From contig CAJFCJ010000007.1 in assembly GCA_904063045.1 (NCBI GenBank), forward strand, positions 1,632,873-1,696,872: a stretch of 64,000 bases of DNA, read 5' to 3'. A program made the translations under genes and the position numbers. Shown here in pieces: positions 15,104-18,921 of the stretch; the stretch's first letter is position 1; the number at the start of each line of letters is the position of its first letter. Source of the DNA: Dimorphilus gyrociliatus (taxonomy: Eukaryota; Animalia; Annelida). The notes below the pieces were generated by a model that saw nothing but the letters and a program-made list of their open reading frames with translations, did not search any database and had not been told where the DNA came from.

Positions 15104-16223
15104 CTTGATATCGCGCAGTACTACTGATCGCCGATCACGTGACGAAAAGACAAACTCAATACATTGCAGAATTGTAAACATTATTTCTCATTCAATAAAA
15201 TCTAATCGTTGGTTTTACATTCCACAGCTGTTTTACAGTGATGGGTGTTAAATTCGTCTTTCAGGAAGCCGATAAAAAGATTGTTGAACTAGTGACCTTT
15301 AGTCGTTCAATAATAATATGATAATCAAACAAGAAAATGTTCATATTTAATGCGAATCACTTATCTGAAAAAGCGCGAGATAAAGACAACTTAAAACAAT
15401 TACTAGGACACTTAAAAAAAGAGTTTACTTAAGATGTATAAAATTTTTAAAAAATTCTTTAAATTTTAGGAAAATCAATAATTCAAGATTTCCAATTTTG
15501 AAAATATACATGTACATTTGAAATAGTCACATCAGATAAAAACAATCATTTTTTGAAAACTTGGAGATAACCCTTATATGTTATCGTTACAAATGCTATT
15601 AATTCCTATTCATATGAAATGTGTGCTCATATTAAATATTTTCATTAATGTTGTAACAAATTGACTTTTCCTAGAAAGTATGAAAAGTACTCAATTTCAT
15701 TGTACATATTATATTGCTGATAAGCAATTTGACTCTATTTCGTATTTGCTTTATGCAAAAAGATTTTTGTACTAATAAAATAGGTATTAATTTTTAAAAA
15801 AATAGTAGAGTTTGCTAAGCCTTCTCTTTTAACTTTTGACTAATCCTGAGAAAGTATGCTGAAAATATTACTTAAAATTCTGTTTTTATGCCTTGTAAAA
15901 TGTCATTGTAAAAGTCGGCATTTCTCTTTCAAAATCGATATTATTAATTGAGTACATAATGAATTTTTTATACTGTTTCACAGACCAGTACAATTGATTA
16001 TATGATCTTTAGGTTCAGGATCATGATATTTAAAATAAATTAATATTTAAAAGTCAATATTCATTTGACAAAAACTCTTTACTATTTCATCTATTTGGCA
16101 CAAAAATAATTGCTATCCTAACAAAATTCTTTCAAATGAAGGTAGCAATTAATTTTAAATTCAAAATTGCTTTTTGGATCAGCTGCCAACTGTTGCGATA
16201 TCTGCCGATGACACGTGACCAAA

Positions 16224-18080
16224 ATGGAATACGGTAGCAGACGAAATGCTTACCTTTTGGTGTACTTTGTCGGATTTTTGGTAAAAAACACACTTGTTAC
16301 TAACAAGTTAAAGCAATATTTATACCTAGAGTGTATTAAATGACTTAAGTAGTAAAATTGAAACCGATTTCAGTTCTTTTGATATAAAATAACTCATAAT
16401 CAATTCTCTGTCTGCAACAGGACCTACTGGGAGTTAGTATGGTCATTCCCCTAATAGGGAAGTATGCTAGAGATTTAGGTGCATCCCCAAGTGTTATTGG
16501 TCTGTTAGGTATGTTATTTGAATTTAAAGAAAATCACTTAAAATCTGTAATTTGTTGTAATTTTTTTTATAGGATCAATTTATGGAGGGATACAACTGTT
16601 TTCAAGTCCGATAGTAGTATGTGTCAATAAATATTATACAACTTCCTGTTCAGATTATTTTTATGATACATAGGGAAGATGGAGTGACATTTATGGTCGA
16701 AAAAATATACTAATATTCTGCTTATTATTAACTGCCGTCTCCTATTTTGGACTAGGCCTTGCTAATACTGTATTCATCCTCTTCTTAGCCCGAATTCCAA
16801 CAGGTTCTATCATTATTTAATGCCTATGTTTTTTATATAAATTGCACTTTACAAATACAGGTATTTTTAAATTTAGTCAGGACACAGCGAAAACTTTTTT
16901 GACCGATATTGTGTCAAAAGAGGATCGAAATCGAGTTATAGGAAATTTCAATGCTGCAAGTAGTGTTGGATTTACAATAGGGCCTAGTGTTGGAGGATAT
17001 TTAGCGACAATCTATGGATTTAAAATAGCTGCTTATACATCAGCAATTTGCTTTGTTTTTAATTTAGGTAAAATTTATCATAATGTTATGTTTCTTTAGG
17101 CTTCATGAAACACTCGCAAGCGATTTTAAAGGCCCGTATAGCCGATGATGATGTTCACTTAGTCGGCTATTTAGGTTCCCTTTCGAGTCTTGGCTTTTCT
17201 TTTGGACCCACAGTCGGAGGAATAATCTATCATTTGCACGGATTCACGGCTGCATCGTGGCTAGCCGCATCGGTATTTGTTATCAACACTGGTTTGTTGC
17301 TGAAGTTATAGCTGTTCAGAAAGTACTTTTCTTCGGTTACGGGTCGCTTGCTCTGTAGTATCTTTCCCCTCATAAAGTTTACTGTGTTCTGAAAAATAAT
17401 CTTTTAATATATTATCAGCTTTGGTTTTCTTCTTGTTGCCAAATGACTCCAAGAGAAGAACAGAAGATTTAAAATCTCGTCAGACAATATCAACTTTGGA
17501 GGCTATAGGAAAAGTCGATTGGAATAGGATGTGGGATATATTTCTTGTTAAATTTCTTATGGGGTTAGGTGTTCTGGTATTTCGATCAAATTTTGCCTTA
17601 TCTTTAGATGAGAAATTTGGAGCCACTCCCCAGCAGGTTGGGTATACTATGTCATACTCTGGGGCAATTGGAACTATCGCTGGTTTAAGCGTTGGATTTT
17701 TTACTAATTTATACAAAAATGATGAGAAACTTCTTATGCATATCGGATTTGTGCAAATTGCAAATTTTGTTGTTTTGACTTTTGCACCCAACATATACGT
17801 ATTTACCTTATTGCTTACGCCATTGGGTATCGTAAATCAAGTTGCTCGTGTTTGTATGACGAGTATTACGATTGAGCGGAACAACAACCAAGATGTAGGA
17901 ATACTATTAGGATTATCAGCAAGCGTCATGTCTTTCGGAAGGATGTGTGCCCCTGCGGTGAATGGATTTTTACTCGAAATTAGTAATAATGGACCAGGAA
18001 TTGTTGCTGCAATTAGCGCCTTGATGGCAACTATTATCATGATTTCTAAAAGAAAAAGTCATAGACAGAAGGAAGATTAG
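16224..18080 (+). CDS. MFSD9: MFS transporter MFSD9-like. Exons 16224-16280, 16421-16508, 16573-16616, 16674-16803, [16861-17067 or 17100-17291], 17419-18080
   Basis: GRWSDIYGRK (MFS motif A) and ARIPTGIFK...VIGNFNAASSVGFTIGPSVGG match MFSD9. All junctions are GT-AG with consistent phases. Confidence 0.85.
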
Positions 18081-18390
18081 TTCGACTGGATAATTTAAAC
18101 CAAATATAACTGTTAGGTATTGCTAATTTGCTAAAACTGACTCCTGTTAAACTGTGATGTCCTGTTTCAAGTCATTAACAATAGATCGTAAAGGAAGTAA
18201 AATTTAATCTCTTTAAGTCTAATAAAAATACTTTTTCTACATTTAATTGTAAAAGAAAGCCTAAACTTATTGATCCATTTAGCGTTAATTGTTCAAATCA
18301 TACTGATACTGAAATTGATAGTTAAATAAATTATTACATTTAAAGTTTATTGGCATAACAAAACAAGACCTAGAATAAAAAAATTATTAA

Positions 18391-18921
18391 TTATCTTTTT
18401 TCGCTTTCTTTGATGAGGCTGTTTTCTTCTCCTTCTTTTTCAATCCGTCCATATTTGCTTTCAAAACGTTGGCATAAGCCTGAGGTTGAATGATTTGAGT
18501 AAGTATTTTCTTAATTTAGCAAATTAGTTCTTACATACCAGTTGAAACCTATTCATATCTTTAGGACTGACTATAGTGCTAATCTTTTTACTACCCAAAA
18601 CAGCTCGAAACAGACACTTGTATTCATTCGGTTCCAGTTTTTCTTTAGGCTTTGATTTGCCGTCATCTGAAAATTAATAGTTAAAAACACAAATGAAAAA
18701 ATAATGAAATTACATAAGAATTATAGAAACATGCGATGATATAATTATTTTACTGACATCTTTTCATTGTAATATTGACTGATCCAGATGATTTTGATTT
18801 CTGAAATATTCTTGTAAGCTCAGATAAAAACTGTAGGGGGGAGAGATATCAAGGCATAAATGAGTATATCCTAAAGAGAAAATATTTTAAAACTCACAGA
18901 ATCATTCTCTAAAAGAACCAT
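18391..18921 (-). CDS. SRP14: Signal recognition particle 14 kDa subunit; 4 exons
   Basis: Spliced product MVLLENDS|FLSELTRIFQKSKSSGSVNITMKRY|DGK...CLFRAVLGSKKISTIV...|AYANVLKANMDGLKKKEKK. Confidence 0.92.

Follow-up and report, generated by a model that had tools for sequence, protein, structure and literature searches.

The single MFSD9 gene of the annelid Dimorphilus gyrociliatus contains two homologous tandem exons, here called A and B, which probably form a pair of mutually exclusive exons (MXEs) of which one copy is used at a time. As to its class, the pair probably belongs to those MXEs whose exclusivity is enforced by an intervening intron that is too short. The gene lies on contig CAJFCJ010000007.1 of assembly GCA_904063045.1, and all positions given below refer to the window, that is the whole stretch of 64,000 nucleotides analysed (positions 1,632,873 to 1,696,872 of the forward strand of the contig).

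To describe the gene, we combined the sequence and translation of positions 15600-18600 with RNA evidence from four runs (X1-X4), which consists of assembled contigs and not of raw reads, so that rare forms can be lost in assembly. X4 is the only run that is identical to the window and from the same species; X1-X3 represent two related organisms, whose identity to the window is about 87-94%. The gene has seven exons on the + strand, A and B included:

16224..16280, + strand: exon 1 with start codon ATG at 16224; read from the sequence, with no counterpart in the GenBank model.
16421..16508, + strand: exon 2; in spliced RNA contigs of X1, X2 and X3; joint 16508>16573 across a GT..AG intron of 64 nt.
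16573..16616, + strand: exon 3; joint 16616>16674 across a GT..AG intron of 57 nt.
16674..16803, + strand: exon 4 (motif A and start of TM4; ends in phase 1); joint 16803>16861 across a GT..AG intron of 57 nt in X1, X2 and X3.
16861..17067, + strand: exon A, 207 nt, the variant of the main mRNA (isoform A, 395 aa); junctions to both neighbours in X1, X2 and X3, the junction to the last exon also in X4.
17068..17099, + strand: spacer, 32 nt, GT..AG, closing with a TAG in frame with A; read from the sequence; unspliced in X4 (depth 236) and X3.
17100..17291, + strand: exon B, 192 nt, alternative to A (isoform B of 390 aa, predicted); homologous to A and present in RNA contigs of X1-X4.
17292..17418, + strand: intron after exon B, 127 nt, partly retained in RNA; joint 17291>17419 and an unspliced contig 17262-17446, both in X4.
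17419..18081, + strand: last coding exon (linker and TM7-12; stop codon 18079-18081); from translation, with a Pfam MFS_1 match of E 1.7e-12.

The junction between exons 1 and 2 is marked by the loose end of an X3 contig before 16420, which equals the end of exon 1. Exon 4 corresponds to Pfam MFS_1 positions 54-93, and the 3' UTR extends to at least 18185, which is as far as the RNA contigs reach.

In a search with a profile built from a relative's full-length protein and two distant homologues, the top named matches were MFSD9 and MFSD9-like proteins (E 1e-90 to 1e-137) spanning molluscs, annelids, a starfish, a crayfish and many vertebrates. The annelid matches from Owenia and Capitella showed 43-44% identity, and bacterial DHA1/Tet-like transporters received far lower scores in the same search. 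By these similarities the gene is an MFSD9 orthologue, which agrees with the name given to it in the first-pass annotation. MFSD9 is, to our knowledge, an orphan transporter without an established substrate. An AF2 model of a relative's A isoform shows 12 TM helices in an MFS fold (pLDDT 90.1), and the alternative exon occupies residues 107-176 of this model. The segment encoded by the alternative exon thus begins midway through TM4 and takes in the rest of that helix, the 4-5 loop on the cytoplasmic side, the whole of TM5 with its motif C and most of TM6, in agreement with the TM4-TM6 segment named before. Motif C (GxxxGPxxGG) is present in both A and B.

The peptides of A and B align with 35% identity (E 8e-13), and both fall in one and the same region of Pfam MFS_1 (108-163 and 122-164 of the profile, respectively). 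Both exons are in phase 1-1 and have lengths that are multiples of three, an AG stands directly before and a GT directly after each of them, and the translations of isoform A and isoform B are both open to the same stop codon. Sequence and translation thereby bear out the tandem pair of the first-pass annotation in its exact coordinates, peptides, phases and splice sites. Exon B has a five-residue deletion and, taken alone, scores below the Pfam cut-off. A tblastn search of the entire 64-kb window returned no third copy or paralogue. As an observation apart, the G+C content at third codon positions is 0.43 in exon B, 0.18 in exon A and 0.32-0.33 in the rest of the gene.

The spacer between the two exons has about half the usual intron length. 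The RNA-confirmed introns in its neighbourhood measure 64, 57 and 57 nt, and published medians are 66 nt for D. gyrociliatus and 57 nt for Capitella (PMC7854359), in line with the earlier statement that the spacer is shorter than the introns around it. Its retention leads, again as proposed, into the in-frame TAG at 17097-17099, after which an ATG follows at 17105 with a gap of 5 nt. The letters alone show candidate yUnAy motifs both within the spacer and towards the end of exon A. We also looked for inverted repeats as possible selector or docking structures, but all pairs obtained were short, AT-rich and unconvincing; one stretch of 12 nt in exon A (17019-17030) is 92% complementary to 17119-17130 in exon B, a match that AT-rich sequence may produce by chance.

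Isoform A is the main mRNA. Each of X1, X2 and X3 contains a spliced contig that joins exons 2, 3, 4, A and the last exon and skips B (depths 140, 140 and 18), the junction from A to the last exon is also found in an X4 contig of depth 232, and a 1404-nt mRNA contig from another relative encodes a full-length A-type protein (P0020). A search with P0001 yielded solely one A-type mRNA, from a relative.

Exon B is likewise transcribed, being present in the RNA contigs of all four runs and thus in three species. In X4, one contig contains the junction from B to the last exon (17291>17419, GT..AG, depth 114), a second retains the 127-nt intron after B (depth 127.5), and a third runs unbroken from 17038 to 17291, that is from 30 nt inside A via the spacer to the end of B (depth 236); the last exon has a depth of 510. 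The contig limits at 17038, 17262 and 17417/17418 fit a k=31 graph with overlaps of k-1. In this run B is always reached via A and the retained spacer, and the composite A-spacer-B form accounts for about half of the transcripts. The X4 assembly has no break at 17098, and a depth of 236 entering B stands against 114 + 127.5 = 241.5 leaving it; because these depths balance without any flow from exon 4 to B, an mRNA containing B alone can make up at most a few percent of the transcripts in X4. Low-coverage branches may be removed by assemblers of this kind.

A different picture emerges from X1 and X2, in which B lies on a separate contig of 194 nt that covers exactly 17098-17291 (depth 26). In a k=31 graph these limits are expected if the graph branches at the donor of B and at an AG shared by two paths into B, as AG forms the last two bases of exon 4 as well as of the spacer. 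The contig break thus lends indirect support to a second route into the acceptor of B, beside the spacer route, in this species. The junctions predicted by the first-pass annotation were therefore recovered in part: 16803>16861 and 17067>17419 are found in three species and 17291>17419 in the same species, whereas 16803>17100 occurs in none of the contigs of the four runs. The joint 17067>17100, which would mark excision of the spacer and was predicted not to occur, is indeed found in none of these contigs, in which rare forms can be missed, and X3, too, reads through the spacer without a break. At the protein level, an exhaustive search with exon B found no full-length protein containing B alone in the protein collections searched, the matches being only the species' own truncated model, a B-like exon ORF of one relative and weak MFS matches; a word-index search with exon B alone gave no match. 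X4 also includes a looped contig of 122 nt (depth 2.8) that reads 16787-16878 through the unspliced intron 4 and then 16787-16816 again, and that is perhaps an assembly artefact.

Translation of the composite RNA ends in a stop at residue 186, which renders this form unproductive. It also accounts for the current database entry. The GenBank model DgyrCDS5982 (CAD5117184.1, 282 aa) takes a Met within exon B as its start (window 17105-18081; L001 5001-5976) and omits the five upstream coding exons (16224-17067), because the annotators' longest ORF began inside B, downstream of the stop in the composite. DgyrCDS5982 is an N-terminally truncated annotation; the public 282-aa model is wrong, and models of 395 and 390 aa should replace it. 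Frequent inclusion of both exons had been put forward earlier as an observation that would speak against mutual exclusivity. Both exons are indeed found on one RNA, at about half of the depth in X4, but there the spacer is unspliced and the reading frame closes at residue 186. As the composite is unproductive and not an in-frame double inclusion, it does not refute the exclusivity of the coding products.

The abundance of the composite nevertheless suggests another reading, in which B is never included alone. The composite would then arise by use of the distal donor at 17292 instead of the donor at 17068, would be unproductive and would serve to lower transporter output in the manner of regulated unproductive splicing, while the acceptor of B would be idle. 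The unbroken X4 contig 17038-17291 with its balanced depths (236 against 114 + 127.5, about half of the transcripts) and the stop at residue 186 are as expected from such a variant, and an RNA-based GenBank model that starts inside B is what a composite template would give. We nevertheless consider this reading unlikely: the B contig of X1 and X2 breaks exactly at 17098, and the pyrimidine tract and AG in front of B are kept in every lineage. It also leaves the coding selection on B unexplained, because it would mean that the frame of B is never translated.

The evidence for this selection comes from comparison with relatives, first of all with L002, a genomic contig of 35.7 kb with the same gene order, which comes from a more distant relative. 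L002 contains both exons and a spacer of 23 nt that again closes with an in-frame TAG, and it shares the 5-nt gap between stop and ATG as well as the Met itself. Between the window and L002, pN and pS amount to 0.098 and 0.66 for exon 4, 0.038 and 0.63 for exon A, 0.187 and 0.784 for exon B and 0.082 and 0.74 for the last exon. Synonymous sites are saturated at this distance, and B still has the same length, without an indel or a stop codon, its changes being distributed 16/7/39 over the three codon positions. Compared to organism A, 20 changes are listed in exon B (6/0/14 by codon position), among which six alter an amino acid, five of them conservatively. At non-synonymous sites B evolves about five times faster than A in the comparison with L002. 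B is free of stops and frameshifts in four lineages, and its pyrimidine tract and AG are good in every lineage compared.

In addition, B retains the invariant or near-invariant residues K110, H111, G134, S140, G143, F144, G147, P148, G151, G152, G159 and F160 of the family and departs only at the near-invariant F109 (Met in B) and I145 (Phe in B). H111, the near-invariant His of the KHSQ motif, is kept in B and replaced by Phe in A. To the single-copy exon of Owenia and Mya, A and B each show 44-48% identity, but they share only 37% with one another. By these measures both exons are under purifying selection. Because selection appears to act at the protein level, the family residues are kept and B is as close to the outgroups as A, B can be regarded as an old, translated exon. 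Neutral evolution of one of the two exons, the other observation that was to count against the proposal, is not what we found, given a pN of 0.187 against a pS of 0.784 and the codon-position bias of B versus organism A.

The same data argue against B never being spliced in alone, as third-position bias, kept frame and length, and intact motif C and invariant residues at saturated divergence would all be unexpected in an untranslated segment. A further idea takes B for the decaying relic of a duplicated exon, transcribed only as part of an intron. Its faster evolution, its five-residue deletion and its score below the Pfam cut-off when taken alone might point in this direction, but pN lies far under pS, neither stop nor frameshift has accumulated in four lineages, the donor of B is spliced to the last exon and B is as near to outgroup orthologues as A is. 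A relic refreshed by gene conversion from A is opposed by the relatives' B exons, which are only 35-37% identical to A. We therefore hold a relic to be very improbable. Downstream of B, D. gyrociliatus (17292-17306) and L002 (4188-4202) have in common the first eight bases of the intron (gtttgttg) and a gaag close by, while the remainder of the intron is unalignable with L002; this conserved start may be a splicing control element.

Translation of B from its own Met at 17105, either on the composite or on an internal transcript and possibly by re-initiation, would result in a 282-aa protein consisting of B and TM7-12. Such a product would account for the coding selection on B, its template would be the composite RNA that is abundant in X4, and the arrangement of a TAG at 17097-17099 and an ATG at 17105, with gap and Met also present in L002, at a position where most orthologues have Phe, would suit it. 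Re-initiation after an ORF of 185 codons is, however, inefficient in eukaryotes, and judged by the AF2 model of a relative's A isoform, half of TM4 together with TM5-6 and the C-domain would form an incomplete MFS fold. Moreover, the stop-start arrangement is lost in the 34-nt spacer of organism B, no Met is found at this position in Capitella or in the genome ERZ25069859, and an ORF of about 280 aa was not found in the RNA contigs of the relatives. Taken together, translation from this Met seems improbable, and mutually exclusive use of A and B is the reading that we prefer.

The arrangement of the two exons extends beyond Dimorphilus. In Capitella teleta, a GT..AG spacer of 34 nt separates two homologous copies of 210 nt, and in the gene model of this species exon 4 is joined directly to the downstream copy. 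With spacers of 23 nt (L002), 32 nt (window), 34 nt (organism B) and 34 nt (Capitella), the exon-level comparison suggested in the first-pass annotation thus finds a tiny spacer in four lineages. In these sequences the shortness of the spacer is conserved as a length class, and its sequence is not conserved. An annelid-like genome (ENA ERZ25069859), whose flanking exons are closest to those of Capitella, has two 210-nt copies that are 57 nt apart, and the neighbouring intron measures about 1.8 kb. Only one copy is present in Owenia and in Pecten, the latter having been checked because copy 2 of the ERZ25069859 genome groups with it. The NCBI isoforms of Mya, Dreissena, Octopus, Asterias and Procambarus show no variation in the TM4-6 segment.

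A tree of 31 exon segments cannot separate one old duplication from repeated independent duplications. Copy 1 of the ERZ25069859 genome groups weakly with the Capitella copies, and exon B groups with the JGI protein P0015 (bootstrap 93), which is possibly the result of long-branch attraction. P0015 is a full-length MFS protein of 401 aa encoded at 411-1616 of L008 (JGI 3300044263); it shares GPT.GGII with B, and a Glyco_tran_28_C ORF stops 2 nt upstream of the P0015 start. The beetle model KAJ8921873.1 (P0017) of Exocentrus adspersus contains a tandem of two MFS N-terminal halves and is probably a fusion of neighbouring genes or of duplicated exons.

We propose the following course of events. 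An old tandem duplication of an ancestral 210-nt exon generated the two copies; this exon encoded the second half of TM4 (TM4b), the loop between TM4 and TM5, TM5 itself including motif C, and most of TM6. Splicing of exon 4 to A and of A to the last exon, as seen in the contigs, supplies the main transporter of 395 aa, and B, with its donor spliced to the last exon, is maintained by selection at the protein level. The 32-nt spacer would leave too little room between the donor of A and any branch point for the acceptor of B, and for this reason A and B could not be joined. Direct splicing of exon 4 to B would produce an isoform of 390 aa with a shorter 4-5 loop and altered faces of TM5 and TM6; such splicing is probably infrequent or confined to few cells or stages. 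When the acceptor of A and the donor of B are used on one pre-mRNA, the composite exon A-spacer-B with its stop at the end of the spacer would be formed, probably as a by-product or as a target of mRNA surveillance. The two isoforms might conceivably differ in substrate or in ion coupling.

A more far-reaching scenario would place the duplication in the common ancestor of Dimorphilus and Capitella and have it enable annelid MFSD9 to switch TM4b-TM6, yielding two transporters with different substrate or coupling properties, with the abundant A+B transcript as a regulated product, either a splicing-level off switch or, more radically, a bicistronic message for a protein of B plus the C-domain. 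In this full form we think it hardly likely.

The literature that we searched contains no link between MFSD9 and mutually exclusive splicing, and the earlier remark that no such splicing had been described for this gene stands in that literature. The mechanism as such is already well known, and the MFSD9 pair is an additional case with an incremental gain. Its interest would lie in three points. A spacer of 23-34 nt in several annelid lineages would be a clean natural case of splice-site crowding that enforces exon choice, interchangeable TM4b-TM6 modules would mark helices that evolution treats as tunable, and the MFSD9 isoforms would represent two matched proteins suited to comparative transport assays.

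The closest known systems are found in C. elegans, where five clusters of exons with lengths divisible by three and intervening introns of less than 40 nt have been confirmed experimentally, namely egl-15 exons 5B/5A (14 nt), let-2 exons 9/10 (30 nt), bet-2, gly-5 and gly-6, and where the minimal spliceable intron is about 40 nt (PMC4165533). The MFSD9 pair resembles these clusters in having homologous tandem exons divisible by three around an unexcised intron that is probably of sub-minimal length, and in C. elegans, too, one of the exons is often dominant. It differs from them in gene and phylum and in the abundance of the spacer-retaining double form in X4; furthermore, both single-inclusion mRNAs of the C. 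elegans clusters have been seen by RT-PCR, whereas the B-only mRNA of MFSD9 is a prediction. In human, MXEs based on steric interference account for 9% of the MXE clusters (PMC5740500). As in exons 2 and 3 of alpha-tropomyosin, the upstream donor of the MFSD9 pair would be too near to the downstream branch point and acceptor for the two exons to be joined. In the vertebrate steric MXEs, however, the exons lie around a longer intron and it is the remote position of the branch point that sets the limit, while in MFSD9 the entire spacer measures 23-34 nt.

Mutually exclusive exons in solute carriers are known from SLC25A3 (exons 3A/3B) and SLC39A14 (PMC5740500). They share with the MFSD9 pair that one carrier gene exchanges a homologous membrane segment within a folded domain, and differ in that they belong to other carrier families and exchange other helices. 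Within MFSD9 itself, the proteins of Owenia, molluscs, an echinoderm, a crustacean and vertebrates have the same 12-helix fold and the same boundaries of the 210-nt TM4-6 exon. The MFSD9-like isoforms X1 and X2 of the chiton Liolophura sinensis (P0053 and P0070), finally, show another type of module exchange, being identical in residues 1-185 and then continuing into two different but homologous C-terminal halves.
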